Below, piece by piece: positions 1-63,994 of a stretch of 64,000 nucleotides of DNA (the stretch's first letter is position 1; the number at the start of each line of letters is the position of its first letter). Origin of the DNA: Podarcis erhardii (Eukaryota); the NCBI GenBank assembly GCA_964252035.1, contig OZ176206.1; one strand, written 5' to 3'. A program made the position numbers and the translations under genes. The notes under the pieces are model-generated. The model saw only the letters and a list, made by a program, of their open reading frames with translations. It ran no database searches and was not told the DNA's origin.

Positions 1-3000
1 GCTGCTAAACCCAATGTGAAGAATTCCAGCTGTGGCAGTAATTAATAGCCAAAAAACGATATGGAAATTGACAGCCTCTGCTAGCACAAGACATTTTTGT
101 GCCTGAGTTAAAAAAATCCAAATGGCACCCTACCTACTTAACATTAGGATATCCTCCCTTAGAAAGGTTGCCTGTATAAGCCTTGTTGAAATGAGCAAGG
201 AGACAGTAGAATTCTTGTTGTGAATTCATATTAGCTTTTGTTCAGCAAAACATCTAAGTAGGTTGGACTGTATCCCTGCCCACCGCTGCCCTCAGTGATA
301 CCCAAAATCTGCTGCCCCACTTGGTCTAATGCTGGTTGCCACCTCTGTCTGAACTTACTGAAGCTGAAATTCCTTCATTTGCCCTGTTAAGTATTTCATG
401 ACAAGCGTATTTTAGCAAAAAGACATCAGGCCTCTGTCCAAGTTGTATAATAAGAAAATAACATGTGTGTGTGTGTGTTGTTGTTGTTGTTTTTTGGTAA
501 GCAAGCTGTTATCCTTCATCCAAGGACCAGCTTGCATAATCATTCTTTAATGGCTCAGTGCCTCTGACCTGCGTTCAAAAATGTATTGTGTTCCTTGTCA
601 AACCTCCATGCTACAGAATCAGGACTGTAGGAAAAGTTTTCAGACCGGATACATCTACGTTACTGCTGCTGTTTCAAGAAAGAATGTAAAGCACAAAGCC
701 AATGCCTTATAGATAGGTGAAGCCATATTTGGTCTGGGGGGGGGGGGAAATGAGATATTACTACAGCTATAGCTAAAGTTGAACAAAAGTTGTACAAGAG
801 CCCACTGGATCAGACTATGTGGAGGATGCTTAGTAAGGGTTTCTGTGGGATCTGCCAAAAATGTTCTTAAGAAGCTCTCTGTATGAAGGTAACTCTTTCT
901 GTTTCAGCATGTTAGTTAGTTCTCACAGGATTATGGGACATGTTTTTGATTGTTCATGTGGATTGTGGCCTCATCAGTACCTTTACTGCTTCTGAATGCT
1001 GATTTAATATGCCAGGTGTTGTATAAAGTGCCTAAGTGACAATTATTCCTGCTCGGAGGCTTCTAATCTACAATAGATTATCATGATGGGGACTAGTCAG
1101 GTATTGGAACAAAATTGAGTTGGGGAGTGTCGTGGCAATGGAGAAGCTTGGATGGTTCAGGAAAGGCTTTGTTAAGGTTATGTGAGATATGGAAAGGACA
1201 CTGAGTGTGGAAAGGACAAGAAGCTTCAGAAGGCATTCAGATTTGGTGGAAACCCAGCTATGTGGGTCTGTCAGATGGGTTTTGGGTAGTGAGTGCTTTC
1301 TGCCAACATTGGCTCTCATGGTTCTAAACCACTTGCTACAGCTACGTAATGGCTTTTTGCACCATATTTCTGTTGGTTAAGCTTCAGCTAAGCTTGGTGT
1401 AGACAACTGCTGGCCTGGCTCCCAATGTGGTGCTTGAAACTTGTGTTAAAGGTCCTTCATTTGTAACCCCCTCTATTAATAAACGTATATTTAGCTTTAA
1501 GTGTAAATGTTATGATCATATACAATGTCGGCACCATAATTTTATTTTTAGAAGATAGCTCTTTGCCTGTTTGCTTTTTTATATTGAATTACTCTGACTT
1601 TCACCGATCATTCAATAACTTTTTAAGGCTTGGAACAATGCATCTGTTGTACTAATTATAGTTGGAATTGTTTTTTTTTCTGAACACTGTTGTGACAGCT
1701 AGTAATTTGTTGAATGGACAGAAAATCACTGTTGGAGGCACTACAGATGGTGGGTCTCCTCAAAGAGGGGGATAACTAACTTCTCCCTGTAACTGTGGGA
1801 AGCATCAGACAAATTTCTTTCTTTCAATGCTTTCATAACCCAGCCTTCTTCATCAGTACAGTACCAGGGTGGGGTTCGACATAAAGTAGTGATTACAAAA
1901 AAGTTAGTGAAACCAACAAAACATTGTTAGAAACAATGGCAAACGAAATAACTGCAAACTGCTTAACAGCAAAGACTAAAACAACCAGTCATTGAACACC
2001 TAAAAAGCCTAAGAGAACAGATATGTCTTTACTTGTTGCCAAAAATGATGTGGTGTCAGCACTGAATGTACTTATAGAGGAAGGGCGCTCCACAAATAGA
2101 GTGCTACCTTGTAGGATGCTCCACCACCCCGGGCAACTTTATATTAACAGTGTGATGTGAAGAAGAGCCGCTGTGCAAGTAAACAGGGTGTGTTTTATAC
2201 ATAAGAGGATGCACTGGGATAGTTTGCATGCCACGCTAAGCCAAACCATGGCTGGGCATGAATGCATTAATGTGTGACTACTTGGAGGAAAACTAGTGCT
2301 CCCTCTCTGGTGCTCCACTCCCTCTCCTGGTCCTCCTGCACTACCTTAAGCTAAGCCAGAGGTTGGCTATGCATTATGTCTGGATTCTGACCCACCCCCT
2401 GGGTGCATGGGTCGGGGTTATGAGTTGTCTCACTGCAAGCAAAGCAGAAGCAGTAAGCCAAGGACAACTTTGGCTGCAGCTCATGGTTTCTGTGGAGTGA
2501 GCCTGGTTTCTCTGGAGCCTGGGTTGGGATGTAATGCTAAGGCAAACATGACTTAGCTCCTGGTAGTGTGGCTAGCAAGAGGATCGGGGGAAAGGAAGTG
2601 GCTACCAGTTTACCTCTTGAGCACCTGCATGCTTGCACATTCATGTGTAGTGGTGGTTTGGTTCAGTATTAGTTAAGAATTGGGCCACTCTAATTCACTG
2701 ACAGAGTACATCACTGAAATTCTTATAACAAACTTGACATGTTTACTAAAACATTAGCAGTGTAGTCAGAAGAATTCACATTCATTTCAGTGGGGCTTAC
2801 TTCCAGGCAAACTGGTACAGGATCAAAGCTTAAATTTATTAATCATTTATTAGCCTTTTTTCTAAATCCTCATGTCAGTAACAAATTTTATTAAAAAGAT
2901 TCATAGCTGTTTACCCTAATTTTGCTGTTAGAACAAAATACATATGTAGAAGTAACTGATTAGTGAATTTGTAATTAAGTTCTGACGTCCCCGATTTTAA

Positions 3001-9725: not shown

Positions 9726-10295
9726 TTCTTTTTTTATAATAATTTTTATTGTTATACATTTTATAAAATTCCATCCAATTTTTCGTTTCAACCCGCCTAC
9801 AACAAATCTTAGTTATTTTTTGACTTCCTTCAGCGTCTCTGACAATCCTCCATGGTTATACCTTTAATACACATTCCCTTTTTTCGTATTGCCATTTTTC
9901 CTCCTTACTCCCATTATTTCTAATAAACAATACTTGTTTTCTTTTTTTTACAGTGCCTCTTTAAATCCCACTAGCGTTGTATTCACGCCACATATATTTT
10001 TCAGATAATCCACAAATTTCCCCCAGTCTTCGATGAACTTTTGATCTTTAGTATNNNNNNNNNNNNNNNNNNNNNNNNNNNNNNNNNNNNNNNNNNNNNN
10101 NNNNNNNNNNNNNNNNNNNNNNNNNNNNNNNNNNNNNNNNNNNNNNNNNNNNNNNNNNNNNNNNNNNNNNNNNNNNNNNNNNNNNNNNNNNNNNNNNNNN
10201 NNNNNNNNNNGGACGACCATCCCAGATAGAAGGAGTGTACTGTTCTTCGGTCAAGGGTATATGATAGCTGCGCTCCCCTGCTAGAACCTCCAAAC
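9726..10295 (-). mobile_element. Younger L1-clade insertion nested in an older L1, spanning the assembly gap
   Basis: 17-bp TSD aagatagcttctttttc at 9709-9725 and 10296-10312; poly(A)/AATAAA at the left end; ORF2 C-terminus KDQKFIEDWGKFVDYLKNICG...EAL* ending at 9948. Confidence 0.85.
10055..10210. other. Assembly gap (156 N)
   Basis: Run of n characters. Confidence 1.
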
Positions 10296-19467: not shown

Positions 19468-19517
<50 letters not shown>

Positions 19518-19540
19518 CGCGCGCGCTTGAGAGAGAGAGC
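19468..19540. repeat. Compound microsatellite (TG)n(AG)n(GC)7 tt (GA)n
   Basis: Direct inspection. Confidence 0.95.
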
Positions 19541-34614: not shown

Positions 34615-34966
34615 CACTGGTTCCCAAACATTTTTTGGGCCACCGCCCCTTGGTTCCATAAATTCATCTCCAGTACCTGCTACCCTATAAAAAGCATTAT
34701 TCAGAAGGGCGGTTTGCACAACCCAATAAAGAAGAGAAAAACACAGTGAAATTCAAAACAGTAACAACCAGTTGTTCATTTATTCAGAATCCAATTTAAA
34801 CTGTTTCCTGTATTTACTGTAATTAATTCAACAAAACTGATGGACTTGATCCAGTGTGGCCAGTCTGATAGTCGTTTACACTTCTGGCACCCCTCTGCCT
34901 CTTAGTAGCCCCTGAGTGACCCCACTGGCCCCCAAGGGATGCTACTACTCTCTTTGGGAACCACTG
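34615..34966 (+). mobile_element. hAT MITE
   Basis: TIRs CA(C)TGGTTCCCAAA / TTTGGGAACCACTG; TSD degenerate. Confidence 0.8.
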
Positions 34967-38714: not shown

Positions 38715-39382
38715 GACTTCCATAGTTTCTGTGAAGTGGTTCTGCTCCAAGTCTTTATACAGAATCAGTCTCTTAGTCTTCATACACTGTCAGCAGCTCT
38801 CCAGGGTCTTGGACAGTTCCTGTCAATGCAGCTACCTGAGATGCCAGTGGCTGATCTTTTTGCAAGCAGAGCAGGCACTTTACAACTGAGCTATGGCCCC
38901 CTCCCCAGTGTTTACCAAATCCACACTACAGAAAACAATAGTTTTCAGTAAGGTTTCTTGGTAGTATAATATATACCTGCTGATTTTATTTTACACTGGC
39001 GTTTCCTAACCCTTGGCAGGAATCTATCCCAAGTGAAGTTCTGCACCGAGACTTCATTCCTTAGGGAGTGGTGATGCTGTGCTCTCCAGATGGCTCTTAA
39101 CAACCTATTGCATTGTCATCGTCTCACTTCTAGTTTGCTTTGTGCTGCAATGCAGCACCACTTCTGCTTTGCTCTTGCCAGACGGCGTGTGTCTTCACTG
39201 TTGAGTCCTGCTTCTAGAAATTGCTTATCCATAAGCAGGTGTTAATTGATGGCTGTTCGGAAGCAATTTGGAAATATATTGCGCTTGTAAAATAATGCTC
39301 TTGAGCTAATGGTAATGGTGTAAACAAACGGAAGGCAATCATACATCATGTTTGTAAATAAAATAACCCTCTGTATTTGCAG

Positions 39383-39540
39383 CATTACCTGACGTGTTTC
39401 AGTGGCACTATAGCTGTGCCCTTCTTGCTAGCAGATGCCATGTGTGTTGGATTTGACCAGTGGGCTACTAGCCAGCTGATTGGGACCATATTCTTCTGTG
39501 TTGGAATCACAACTTTGCTGCAAACAACCTTTGGGTGCAG
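39383..39540 (+). CDS. SLC23A2: SVCT2 coding exon 4 ([53 protein letters not shown])
   Basis: Acceptor ctgtatttgcAG; donor CAG|GTAAGT; 158 nt, phase 0/2. Confidence 0.97.
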
Positions 39541-42312
39541 GTAAGTTAAGAGGATGATATTTGACTGGCTGTTAACTGTTTAGAGGTACACCTCTCCCTA
39601 TCCCAAGCAACTAGTTCAACTTTGGCCAGTGATTCAAGAATTAGTGCAGCTTAAATAAAAAAAGTAGGTCAGAAATAAGTAGCCCGCCCGAGTATACATG
39701 TTAATTTATTAAAACAATAATTAGCTATTGGAACATTTTTTAAAAAAGCATGACTGATATTTCAAATATCTGAATCATGTGAACCTGCCTTATGCCAAGT
39801 GAGATGGTTGGTCCACTGGTTTTCTCTGAAAAAACTCCTCCAGAGGCCCTTCCCATCCTTCCGGTCATTTCCTGAGAGATGCTACTAACGATAGAGCATG
39901 GAGCCTTCTGCTTGCAAACATGCGCTTTGCCTCTGAACCAGGGCAAAGGGCCCTCATCCAGTTGCACGCATTTGTGGCATATTAGCAATCCAAAATGGGG
40001 ACCAAAAGCAACAGCAACTGACCTCTTTTCTGTCTAAAAATCACTTCTCTGCCTTGCTAACTGGGGGTGATTCCAGCTCACTGTAAGCATTGAGGGGATA
40101 AACTAGTTGATACAAGTATGGTTGTGGATAGCATGCACTGTTTTGTGGGTAGTTTTGCTCTCTGTGCCTTTCCAAAAATATATATTTAACTCCCACACCC
40201 CTCAAAAATATCCCTTGTGGTAGCAGGGAATTCTGCTCCAGTACTTCTTTCTATATATTTGTCCTAAATGTAACAAAAATTTAAAATAATATTAACAATT
40301 CATTGTATTAGGCTCTTGTTATCTCCTTCCATGGCACCTGTTCTTCCAAGTAATATCAAGTCTTGGAGTCTTTCCCTCAAAAACAAGGTATTTGGCATAA
40401 TTTACATATGAAATAGAATATTGGGTGGTAAGATAGCAGCAGCTCAGTAGGAGAGTTCAGTTAAGCCTGTTTAAATAAACGAAGATGATTGAAGAGAATC
40501 TTCCCAAAGAAAAACCTCAAGCCCTGGGCAATACAATTTCAAGTTTCTTGAATTAAAGTAGATATGATCTAGTTTCATGTCAAGTGATCCACAGAAAGAT
40601 ATCAATTGTACCAATCTAAGGGACATTTTTTTCCCTTTGTTTTTTCCTGACTTGCTCAGAATGTTCCTGCTGTTTCTTCCAAGACATGATACTATAGTTA
40701 TAGTTCCCAGAAAGGAAATCTTGCTCCTCCCTGTGAACTGACCTGCCCTGTAATTCTGACAAGCCTTAAAAGCAGTTCTTCCCTGAGCAGAGGAAGCCCA
40801 AAGGCTATAGCAACCATATGTAAAAATCTTCCTTAAAATAAGCACTAGAAGACAGAGCTCTCACTTCTGGTTTTCTCCCTGCAAAAATCAGTGCTAAGCA
40901 TGGTTAGTACGGGCCCTTTGCATTGTGATGAAGGGAAGTGAGATGGAGGGAGTGTAAGAATCTACACCACACAGCTGGTTTCCTAAGCGTGAACAGGAAA
41001 TTTGAGAATGGTACTTCTGTACCAGACTACAGTCCTTTAATCTTCCCCTTTCTCTTTAAGTCAAACTTTTCTGTATTTTGCAAGCTCAAATTCCACTGGT
41101 ACAAAAATACTTTAATGGTTTCTGGCTATTACTTCTGATTTTAAGAATCCAAGTTATTTACACCGGCATAGGTTCATCTAAAAAACTGTTAAACATCTTC
41201 ATTATTGCTCTTGCCACCTGGATGAACTCTAAATGTGCATTAGTAGAACATAAGTGAATAGATACAAGATTGTTTGTACGCTCCAGCCTTTAAAATAGTC
41301 TGTCACAGTATCTCCAGATTTTCTCTTAAACCTTTTGGATTCTCTATGTACCTCATTTTTAGAATGTTTTATGTTTGTTAATTAACAAAATGTATATACT
41401 GTTTGGTTGTAACAAAACCTGTAACAAAGTAGCACTAATTCCTTCCACCCCACCCCAAGTTATACTTGAAAGTATTTGCTGCATGCTAGCTGACAGACTT
41501 TTGACAAAGGGGTTATTGTGACTGAACTGTTTGAGAAGCAAGAAATGCACTTGTTAAGTCTGATATGTCTCACATGTCCTAAATAAATTTGCTCGGAATA
41601 AGAAGTCATGGATTCTGTAAGATGCTAAAAAGATCAGTCCTTAATCACCATAAAAAGTGAACTCATGGCTTAAATGCAATTTGATTTAGGTATGTAAAGA
41701 CATGGTCTGATTTTTATTTTTACCCCACAGAGAAGAAAGAAACCCTTTCTGGAACTAAATTCTAAACACTCAGTGATCTAACTTTTGAAGAATGTATTTA
41801 ATTGCCTACACTTAATTAGAGGGCTTTTGAAAGGGTAATGTGTACGTGAGTTAGAAGAGGAACAACTTTACCAGGGGCAGAGCACAAGAGCCAACAAAAT
41901 CCCCGTGATATTGAGTCATTCGCCCAGCGTACCTTTCTTCTATTGCAAAGAATAGTGTTCAGTTTTTGGATAGTTGTATGGGTTGCTCTTAAAAAGCAAA
42001 TGCCACAGCTTATTGCCTGTGCAAATTTGAGTTGTTTATGTGCACCTTAAAAATAATGATATTCTGCCAAAATATCTTGTATAATACAGATATTACACTT
42101 CACAAAGTTTAAGATGTTGTCACAGCACCTCTTTGTGGTCACAAATACATTGGGTTTGTATCAACAGTGTCACTCAGATGATGGTAAGGCTTCTATCAGC
42201 AGAACGGGATGGTAATCTTTTGGCTATTCCTCTTCCCCCCTTGTAGCTCCCCCTCAACCCCCCCACCAATCTGCTCTAGAACCAGAGGTTCCGTGCCAAC
42301 TTGAATAAAATA

Positions 42313-44805: not shown

Positions 44806-45519
44806 GAATTCAATTGGCTACTATGGGAATTGGCATGGAATGATCCAGCAGGGCTCCTCTTGTGAACATGCAACTCCCTCCCCATTTGCATGGGGGAGTT
44901 CTGCCCCCACCCTGACCCCTTTCTGGTGCCGAAAATGGCACACATGTGCGTGGTCCTATGCATACCAAATGCACACAATTGTGGAGTTGCCTGTATTCTT
45001 CTGTATACTTAAGTATAATGGTGTATGTATGACCTGTTTCACACAGCTGCCTAAATCTCCTCCTGTGGGTCTTCCCAAGCAATCTGAAAATATGTTGATG
45101 TATCTGTCTCTGCTCTTCTCTCTTCATGTGTCTTGAACCCCTGGCCACCAGTCCCGCTGGTGTATACAGTCCCAAGGGCAAATGTTAGTAGTCCCAACAG
45201 GTCAGGAAACACTGTCCATGTTCAATACTGAAAGCCAAGTCCATAGTCCAACAGTCAGGCCAGTCGGCCTCTGCAGCCGTTCCAAGGGGTTCAGTCCTGT
45301 GAAGCTCTTAGGACAACCAAGCTGTGGTCATTCAACATGAGAAGTTGAGCAGACACAGCACCTCAGCTCTGCTTCTCTTCTATCCCTTGAATCTTGATCG
45401 CAGCATCTGGGATTGATAAGGCAGGTGACCCCCACCTGTCCTGAGCCTAATCCACTGACACACCTCCTCCTAGGTCAGCTAGTGAGCTGGGCTGGGGAGT
45501 CTAGCCTGCCCCAGCCTCC

Positions 45520-61606: not shown

Positions 61607-61712
61607 GGGCATTTTCATAGAAGGCCTTTCCTGTGTATTAGATGGAGTGTTTGGCACTGGGAATGGATCTACTTCCTCTAGCCCCAACATCGGAGTCTTG
61701 GGGATTACGAAG
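61607..61712 (+). CDS. SLC23A2: SVCT2 coding exon 11 ([36 protein letters not shown]), carries the NAT signature motif
   Basis: Acceptor ttccaattgcAG; donor AAG|GTACAT; 106 nt, phase 2/0; [10 protein letters not shown] fits the [Q/E/P]NxGxxxxT[R/K/G] NAT motif. Confidence 0.97.
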
Positions 61713-62493: not shown

Positions 62494-62838
62494 TAGTTTA
62501 GTTCCAGTAAGATTGTTAAATTATGTGTATCAACTGCACTTTAGTTTGATTTGTATGAAGACGTCATTGTTTTAATAGTCTTATTAACAATGTCTTGTTA
62601 GACATTGCCTTGAAACTCACCATATTAGGTAGTACATAAATACTTTTATGAATGAAATAAATAAGCTGTGTATATGCATACAGTTTAATATCCTTGAGGA
62701 ATGGTTTGCAGGGAATGCAGGTGGTGGTTTCAGCATCTTCCCCCCTGCACCCCGCATCTTGTGTTGTAAGTTGTACTTCCATCCAGCATGTTTTATACAT
62801 GATGGGGACAGGTGCTTAAAGACACATGATTTCTAGAG

Positions 62839-63850
62839 CAGTGTTTCCCAACCGGTGTTCCGCGGCACCCAACCGGTGTTCCTCGCCGTGCTCGAGGGAG
62901 GCGCTTCCTCTCGTGAGGGAGGCGAGAAGAAGGGAGGCGGGGCCGAGCAGGCGGATTGGCCCGGCGGCGGCCGTGACGTCACCCTGCGCGCGGCGGCAGA
63001 TTCGAAACTCCTCAGGCGCAGGCGCGGCTGGAGCAGGAAGGCCGCTCTGCTTGAGAGGAAAGAGAGGGAGCCGCCGCCGGCGGGATGAAGAACACCGTGA
63101 AGAAGCTGCTGAGCAAGCACAAGCCGCACTTGCCTCAGGGTCTTACTGCCCACCCGCCTCTGTTTCCTTGCTGTGCTTGCTCAAACGGAACAAAGAGCAG
63201 GGAAAGCCCCTCCCCTCCAGGCAAGCAGGCAGGAGGGAGAGGGAGAGAGAGAGAGAGAGAGAGAGAGCGCGTGCGAGCTGGCTGGCTTGGGTGAGTAGGT
63301 GAGGGAAAACTTTTGCCTTCCTTTCCTCCCTCCCCGTTAAATCCCTCTCCTGCATTCTTAGCCAGCTGCTTCTCTGCACACCCCTCTCGTGCTCCTTGTC
63401 CGTTCTGTGTTTTTCCTTCCCTCCCCACTTAAAATGTGGTTTAAAAGCATGGATCCACAGGGATTCTCAGGATTTTTGCATTGGGTCACCCCAAATTCAC
63501 CATCAGATCATATGTCTGTGGCCACAGCATGAAGCACAAAAATGATACATCATTAATATTCACTGCCCACGGCGGCAGCCAATCGGCTGCTGCAAAGGGC
63601 GGGCCCTCACAGGTTCACTGAATAAAGTATTTTATAATTTTTCATATTTCTGTTTACTTACTATTTCATAATAAAGTAATTATAAAATACTTTATTTGTG
63701 TTTATTTGATTCCTATTAAAGAGAGTTACTTTATATATAGTCAATATAGGCACAGAGTTAATTTTTTAAACATTTTCTAATGGTGGTGTGCCTCGAGATT
63801 TTTTTCATGAAACAAGTGTGCCTTTGCCCAAAAAAGGTTGGGAAACACTG
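62839..63850 (+). mobile_element. Non-autonomous hAT-Charlie element with GC-rich promoter-like cargo
   Basis: 15-bp TIR CAGTGTTTCCCAACC / GGTTGGGAAACACTG; perfect 8-bp TSD ttctagag at 62831-62838 and 63851-63858, matching the NTCTAGAN Charlie target. Confidence 0.92.
62930..63030 (+). promoter_or_regulatory. CpG-island-type promoter motif cluster inside the hAT element
   Basis: GC box GGGAGGCGGGGC 62932-62943, inverted CCAAT (ATTGG) 62955-62959, full CRE TGACGTCA 62974-62981, NRF1-like GCGCAGGCGC 63016-63025. Confidence 0.6.
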
Positions 63851-63994
63851 TTCTAGAGTCATGTGTAGCCTGGCCCTTAAATCTTTTTTTTTTATCGTCA
63901 GTGATTTGCTTGTGAAAGTCTGAATATGAACATCGCCATCTACTGGGTGCAATTTTTTTTTTAGGCAGGGAGGTCGAGGTTTCTTACAAAAATA

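Follow-up and report, generated by a model that had tools for sequence, protein, structure and literature searches.

A young hAT element in an SLC23-family intron of the lizard Podarcis erhardii probably carries a copy of the CENPW promoter and start codon

Introduction

Plants are well known for the capture of gene fragments by DNA transposons; vertebrate cases are known but rare, and to our knowledge they have been documented mostly as single, old and inert copies. One plant system is that of the Pack-MULEs of rice and other grasses, Mutator elements with long terminal inverted repeats (TIRs) and target-site duplications (TSDs) of 9–11 bp, of which there are thousands. Pack-MULEs can put gene fragments in or near other genes (PMC5861414). 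A survey of 100 animal genomes has reported 370 Pack-TIRs (208 hAT; only four multicopy) and none from a lizard, and has documented hAT Pack-TIRs with a bias toward GC-rich DNA (PMC8277862). Pack-hAT-N8_XT of Xenopus tropicalis is a multicopy example, which carries 291 bp of the CAPSL 5'UTR and has copies on three chromosomes (Tan et al. 2021, PMC8277862).

Here we report an element of 1012 bp from Podarcis erhardii, found in a window of 64,000 nt (the whole stretch analysed, from contig OZ176206.1 of assembly GCA_964252035.1), to which all positions given below refer. We consider it very likely that this is a hAT Pack-TIR in which a DNA-level copy of the CENPW 5' end has taken the place of the interior, and which has recently been inserted in sense orientation into an intron of an SLC23-family gene. 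The copied part would consist of a core promoter and leader of about 180 bp, the start codon and about 16 codons. In common with Pack-hAT-N8_XT, the lizard element is a non-autonomous hAT with intact ends around a few hundred bp of host 5' sequence, and it shares with Pack-TIRs distinct TSDs, a GC-rich cargo and presumed transposition after capture. The two differ in host (Xenopus against a squamate) and in cargo, which is only 5'UTR in Pack-hAT-N8_XT, whereas in the lizard it would be the core promoter of a cell-cycle gene together with its start codon. Like the Pack-MULEs, the element belongs to the TIR transposons and duplicates GC-rich pieces of genes as truncated, non-functional gene starts; unlike them, it is found in an animal and is of hAT type, with an 8-bp TSD and 15-bp TIRs.

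Structure of the element and its insertion site

According to sequence reading and a repeat finder, the element occupies positions 62839–63850. Its 5' TIR, CAGTGTTTCCCAACC (62839..62853, plus strand), is complementary at 15/15 positions to its 3' TIR (63836..63850, minus strand), which is the exact reverse complement, and both ends are bordered by the 8-bp TSD TTCTAGAG, whose left copy (62831..62838) is the same at 8/8 positions as the right copy (63851..63858). Short ends beginning with CAG/TAG and an 8-bp duplication on both sides are what we looked for in a hAT element, and both were found. The TSD consensus of hAT elements is nTnnnnAn / nnnTAnnn, and TTCTAGAG fits both forms. Within the 64-kb window the TIR occurs three times at no more than two mismatches, against 0.10 occurrences expected, and no second copy of the element was found there. 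The perfection of both the TIRs and the TSD indicates a recent insertion of this copy. The absence of internal TIRs makes it unlikely that the element is a composite "macrotransposon" built from two hAT copies.

Two tandem subterminal repeats (CCCAACCGGTGTTCC..., 62847..62885, plus strand) with a spacing of 21 bp lie at the junction of the transposon end with the cargo. The direct repeat that underlies them (62847–62861 against 62868–62882) is identical at 15/15 positions and reaches 18 nt at 94% identity in the repeat finder; it is likely to be a transposase-binding motif and/or a footprint of template slippage. At the other end, the AT-rich 3' part (63431..63835, plus strand) is presumed to be transposon backbone on the basis of sequence reading, repeats, composition and motifs. 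It contains a perfect 19-nt inverted repeat (63621–63639/63678–63696) and two AATAAA signals (63621, 63670), as well as a short GC-rich islet (63565–63612) with a CCAAT and a GC box inside. No Pfam domain, that of a transposase included, was found in any open reading frame (ORF) of the element, and no Rfam family was found across it. The preliminary description had pointed to perfect TIRs and TSD on a 1012-bp element, to the 15-bp direct repeat and to the absence of a transposase motif, and all of this has been borne out.

The transposon ends (62839–62882 and 63431–63850) enclose an insert homologous to a host gene, as is characteristic of a Pack-TIR; the parental locus was compared in its orthologous form, from CENPW of four other reptiles. 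The element is, on these features, a non-autonomous, transposase-less hAT, very probably of Pack-TIR type.

The host gene was recognised from two exons found as PF00860 (Xan_ur_permease) in the six-frame translation, one SLC23-type exon at 39362–39541 (plus strand) and one SLC23/SVCT-family exon upstream of the element at 61607..61712 (plus strand). The former matches solved SVCT1 structures with an E-value of 7e-24, and the residues in which it differs from SVCT1 are presumably those of SVCT2, which would make the gene SLC23A2 and not SLC23A1. The exon at 61607–61712 is followed after 1.1 kb by the element, and the ATG of the cargo is on the same strand as the exons. Because the host exons and this ATG are all on the plus strand, the cargo is sense-oriented in the intron. 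Of the earlier placement in sense orientation inside SLC23A2, the orientation and the SLC23-family intron have therefore held.

Origin of the cargo

The GC-rich interior is sharply delimited as a compositional island at about 62850–63050, with 69–76% GC. The interval 62883–63084 has 72% GC and 27 CpG, and its CpG observed/expected ratio is 1.08 against 0.29 in the remainder of the window. We have assigned 62907..63084 (plus strand) as CENPW-derived promoter and 5' leader, basing on blastn, a five-way alignment, motifs and the CpG ratio; it is possible that the cargo begins already at 62883. This region contains, in order, a GC box (62936–62942), an inverted CCAAT (62955–62959), a perfect CRE TGACGTCA (62974–62981), a CDE plus CHR GGCGGCAGATTCGAA of the form GGCGG-CAGA-TTCGAA (62992–63006) and an NRF1-like site GCGCAGGCGC (63016–63025). 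The GC box, CCAAT, CRE and NRF1-like site are just where the preliminary description had placed them. The ATG at 63085, contained in GCCGGCGGGATGA, opens the reading frame MKNTVKKLLSKHKPHLPQ, and G or C occupies 16 of the 17 third positions after it, again as had been described.

When residues 1–22 of this ORF were compared with PDB sequences, only chicken CENP-W was matched, weakly, over residues 7–22 (E 0.11), and Pfam gave no match for the short cargo ORF. A search with chicken CENP-W, a query identical to PDB chain 3b0c_W over residues 2–76, gave 302 CENPW proteins; the best 120 of these include the squamates Varanus (P0050), Salvator (P0071), Candoia (P0095) and Elgaria (P0118), and no lacertid CENPW is among these best 120 of 302. 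The N-termini of the squamate proteins (MKRTVPRSTLKRVVKKHKPHLRLG...) align with the element peptide MKNTVKKLLSKHKPHLPQG, and the alignment begins at the N-terminus of CENPW itself. The BLOSUM62 local score against squamate CENPW is 58; the 2000 shuffled peptides score 24 +/- 4.6, the highest of them 50, and none reaches the observed value. The PDB match, this permutation test and nucleotide identity together mark 63085..63134 (plus strand) as the putative CENPW start and about 16 codons (MKNTVKKLLSKHKPHL).

The nucleotide comparison was made with the native CENPW loci of Varanus, Elgaria, Candoia and the turtle Pelodiscus, in which the exons were placed by tblastn. These loci are native genes with exons 2–3 downstream, and the four outgroup species are taken as very anciently diverged. 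Positions 62907–63020 match Elgaria CENPW from -155 to -44 relative to the ATG at 71% over 118 columns (blastn, E 1e-10), and a second match to Elgaria, in exon 1, follows collinearly at 63093–63129. Candoia CENPW gives two collinear HSPs with the cargo (E 1e-4 and 3e-4); the CENPW matches are all short alignments, of 84–118 bp at 68–71%. In the reciprocal direction, the cargo is the only significant match of the Elgaria CENPW 5' region in the 64-kb window (E 5e-8). In the five-way alignment, GCGGCGGCAGATTCGAA (62990–63006) is found at the homologous place in 4/4 outgroups with 1–4 substitutions, and within this block GATTCGAA is invariant even in the turtle and the flanks of TTCGAA are nearly so. 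Blocks of TGACGT and GGGGC-GAGCAG are common to the cargo and the squamate CENPW promoters. Over 62925–63010 the cargo is 59–67% identical to the outgroups, which are 54–72% identical to each other, and by this measure the cargo promoter behaves like one further CENPW orthologue. The first 14 bases of the TIR are nowhere matched exactly in the four outgroup loci, so a shared transposon is not the source of the similarity.

Among functional CHR sites TTCGAA is one of the three commonest, the G/C-rich CDE lies 4 nt upstream of the CHR, and CHRs are located on or beside the transcription start site (TSS) (PMC4176359); CENPW, moreover, is included in a listing of p53-DREAM targets (PMC5729532). 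In the cargo, the CHR TTCGAA has its CDE 4 nt upstream, and this arrangement is conserved in the four outgroup CENPW promoters. Very probably, then, the cargo contains the regulatory heart of the CENPW promoter. It has the same GGCGG-4 nt-TTCGAA, CRE and GC-rich context as the native promoter, with the ATG spacing of the other reptiles, but it lacks exons 2–3, ends after about codon 16 and is flanked by transposon ends. One further difference is that the anguimorph outgroups have a TGACG-type site upstream of the CRE, where the cargo has an inverted CCAAT. Judging from these alignments, the source gene of the cargo is CENPW, and the earlier proposal that the GC-rich interior is host DNA with a captured promoter and start codon agrees with its alignment to CENPW of four reptiles. 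A processed retrocopy of CENPW was also considered and rejected: upstream sequence to -155 is present, and exons 2–3 and a poly(A) tail are absent.

The region downstream of the captured codons

Exon 1 of the outgroup genes has some 30–31 codons (about 30 plus one base) and ends with ...ANTDLL|GTGAG. In the cargo, five codons (15 nt) after MK that are present in all outgroups are missing. The approximately 16 captured codons are 66–76% identical in nucleotides to the outgroups, against 80–94% among the outgroups themselves, and in the next 31 nt, past about 63134, the values fall to 39–48% against 65–77%. Because homology collapses there, the part of the ORF past about codons 17–19 is not CENPW coding sequence. 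Capture of a first coding exon, as had been proposed, thus stands for the CENPW start and about 16 of 31 codons, and the five codons near the N-terminus are lacking.

We have assigned 63135..63430 (plus strand), on the basis of this identity drop and of weak intron-1 matches, as a GC/CT-rich stretch that is not CENPW exon 1. It contains a weak GT at 63140, (GA)12 at 63243–63266, GTGAGT at 63291–63296 and a pyrimidine-rich tract. These roughly 300 bp of the GC-rich interior match outgroup CENPW only weakly, though collinearly, in intron 1, and they may represent intron 1 of CENPW in rearranged form or else another captured piece. Just beyond the end of homology, at 63172–63183, a 12-nt stretch repeats the CENPW codons of 63110–63121 perfectly in inverted orientation. 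What the preliminary description had called a consensus donor (63291) and an intron-like stretch do exist, as GTGAGT and a pyrimidine-rich tract. We have rejected this GTGAGT as the native exon-1 donor, because the native donor follows the ...DLL codons and these are absent here.

With regard to splicing into the host gene, the exon at 61607–61712 terminates on a whole codon, followed by GTACAT, and the coding nucleotides before the candidate donors number 55 for 63139|63140 and 206 for 63290|63291. From these values neither of the two would join in frame to the host exon that comes next; the frame is deduced from phase, since that exon lies outside the 64-kb window. A fusion protein is accordingly not predicted at the SLC23 site.

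Searches of sequence collections

We searched for relatives of the element in protein and metagenome collections. A word-indexed protein search with the 158-aa ORF that spans the cargo gave no match, the query having probably been swamped by a low-complexity run of RERE. A search of the same kind with residues 1–40 of the 69-aa ORF gave, among 5.8 billion sequences, one candidate and none scoring; an identity of 16 residues might fall short of E<=10 in a collection of this size. There was no match in an exact look-up of 10 ORFs of the element and 10 flanking ORFs, none (0 matches) when 1.84 billion representatives were searched exhaustively by HMMER with a profile of two ORFs from the other two long frames, and none in exact scans of metagenome contigs with a 22-mer of the cargo and a 23-mer of the TIR. 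We conclude that the collections searched contain no ORF calls from the non-coding DNA of this lizard.

Alternative explanations

Three other accounts of the interior have to be weighed against capture from CENPW. It is very improbable that the interior is the transposon's own sequence, such as the promoter or 5' end of an autonomous hAT transposase retained in an internal-deletion derivative. Derivatives of this sort are the usual non-autonomous hAT elements, but the interior is collinear with promoter and exon 1 of native CENPW in four reptiles, its 15-nt regulatory block is conserved as far as turtles, its ORF matches the CENPW N-terminus, the 14 outermost bases of the TIR do not occur exactly in the CENPW loci, and a transposase-like domain is absent. 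The preliminary description had itself named alignment to the 5' region of an autonomous hAT as the contrary case; what the interior aligns with is the 5' part of native CENPW (promoter and exon 1) in four reptiles, at loci in which this TIR 14-mer has no exact match. It is scarcely credible, furthermore, that the likeness to CENPW has arisen by chance between GC-rich promoter-like DNA and a short basic peptide. The single PDB match at E 0.11, the empty Pfam result and the commonness of CRE and GC boxes in promoters would leave room for it, yet in several species two to three independent collinear segments match, correctly ordered and spaced, the cargo is the reciprocal best match in 64 kb, none of the 2000 permuted peptides scores as high, and the annotated start codon is where the match begins. 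A third account concerns the extent of the capture and is possible, if rather doubtful: 62883–63430 would be one contiguous CENPW piece (promoter, exon 1 and the start of intron 1) that was scrambled later between about 63135 and about 63230. In its favour are weak collinear matches of Varanus intron +1..39 to 63249–63287 (69%, E 0.02), of Candoia intron +69..92 to 63371–63394 (21/24, E 0.001) and of Varanus +132..154 to 63301–63323, and the occurrence of GGAGGGAG...GCTGGCTGGCT after exon 1 in Varanus and Elgaria as well as at 63231–63287. These intron matches are, however, short, of low complexity and inconsistent in spacing, and the highly conserved second half of exon 1 (...ANTDLL with its CTG|GTGAG donor) is missing, identity being 39–48% where 65–77% is seen among the outgroups.

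A separate question is whether the CENPW-derived cargo does anything at its present site. Young transposon copies are frequently silenced, and the cargo may equally well be an inert passenger, silenced or methylated, that gives no transcripts, has no effect on the host gene and owes its CpG richness to youth only. The perfect TIRs and TSD mark a copy so young that CpG decay is uninformative, the captured gene start is truncated, lacks five codons and has no in-frame route into the host gene, and the transcription of surveyed Pack-TIRs was mostly attributed to host promoters (PMC8277862). Against inertness, the set of core-promoter motifs is intact with a conserved CDE/CHR at the expected TSS position, and CHR/CDE modules bind their complexes even within foreign DNA (PMC4176359). 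The odds that the carried promoter is transcriptionally competent, as estimated from its motifs, are about even.

Proposed capture, spread and activity

For the capture of the CENPW 5' end, a single acquisition is most likely, by template switching while a hAT copy was being repaired or replicated. Models of template switching and gap repair, together with a bias toward GC-rich DNA, have been described for multicopy Pack-TIRs and for Pack-MULEs (PMC8277862, PMC5861414), and our view follows them. The duplicated junction motif and the 12-nt inverted repeat are compatible with slippage or switching, without proving it. An autonomous hAT would mobilise the element in trans by recognising the 15-bp ends and the subterminal repeats, and after capture the cargo would have been spread by transposition.

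A bolder proposal, which we put forward only tentatively and think somewhat unlikely, is that a young lacertid hAT lineage repeatedly captures CpG-island promoters together with the first 16–21 or so codons and amplifies them to tens of copies. If this is true, copies of the CENPW type would scatter cell-cycle-regulated (CDE/CHR) promoters through introns, and the lineage would be a vertebrate counterpart of the rice Pack-MULEs and an ongoing source of transcription starts and chimeric first exons. Repeated captures, if real, would also allow the mechanism of capture and its bias toward gene 5' ends and GC-rich DNA to be studied in a vertebrate. A young and perfect hAT copy with an intact-looking core promoter amounts to a portable promoter that could be inserted into other genes; should the family have tens of copies and the promoter fire, each insertion would be a natural experiment in alternative transcription starts. 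A family of that size, if real, would also be conspicuous beside the mere four multicopy cases of the animal survey (PMC8277862).

If active, the promoter would fire near the CHR, at about 63000–63040, in proliferating cells, and a start in this interval is plausible because the promoter looks complete. Transcripts would end at the AATAAA of 63621 or 63670, or would be joined out of frame to downstream host exons, with 63139 or 63290 as the donor. The practical consequence of the single copy in the SLC23 intron is probably small because no in-frame fusion is predicted; firing of the promoter here would place a transcription start inside a vitamin-C-transporter-type gene.

Junction and interior of the captured segment

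The perfect 12-nt inverted repeat located at window 63110-63121 and 63172-63183 is placed just at the end of the CENPW homology: its first arm consists of the CENPW codons TGAGCAAGCACA (63110-63121), and its second arm is their reverse-complement copy, present 50 nt downstream and directly past the point where the homology ceases. This repeat may be a footprint of the capture, left by fold-back or by template switching, or it may have arisen by chance, for which we estimate a probability of roughly 0.3-1%. Further downstream, in the part of the cargo past the CENPW exon 1 homology, window 63249-63394 has short collinear similarities to CENPW intron 1, within its initial 150 nt, at the native loci of both Varanus and Candoia; in one of these, TCTCTGCACACCCCTCTCGTGCTC of the cargo and the Candoia intron are identical at 21 of 24 positions.

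Within the promoter portion, the five-way alignment of the cargo with four outgroup CENPW promoters points out one site upstream of the CRE, where the cargo carries an inverted CCAAT box (GATTGGC, 62955-62959) and Varanus and Elgaria carry a TGACG-type site. The difference may reflect a lineage-specific exchange of one activator site for another in the promoter of CENPW.

In the AT-rich 3' region of the element lies a small islet of GC-rich sequence (63565-63612) that contains CCAAT and GGGCGG; it aligns weakly and in inverted orientation with the CCAAT region of the cargo (local score 15, a score reached by one of 300 shuffles). The islet could be what is left of an earlier capture or of a partial duplication in inverted orientation. 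The same AT-rich region also includes a perfect 19-nt inverted repeat, whose arms (63621-63639 and 63678-63696) are 38 nt apart and whose two arm regions have one AATAAA each on the + strand, at 63621 and 63670.

Other features of the window

At 34615-34966 lies another hAT-like miniature element, older and about 350 bp long, with the ends CACTGGTTCCCAAA and CAGTGGTTCCCAAA and without a matching TSD; its kinship with the studied element is confined to the termini. An isolated TIR-like 15-mer, CAGTGTTTCCTGACC, is present with two mismatches on the - strand at 45200-45214; no partner was found for this 15-mer, which may represent the solitary end of a related hAT. The window also includes 156 consecutive N at 10055-10210, an assembly gap or masked sequence. 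When the studied element was searched by self-BLAST across the window, the sole other match was a GA/AG microsatellite (19485-19535) resembling the (GA)12 within the element.
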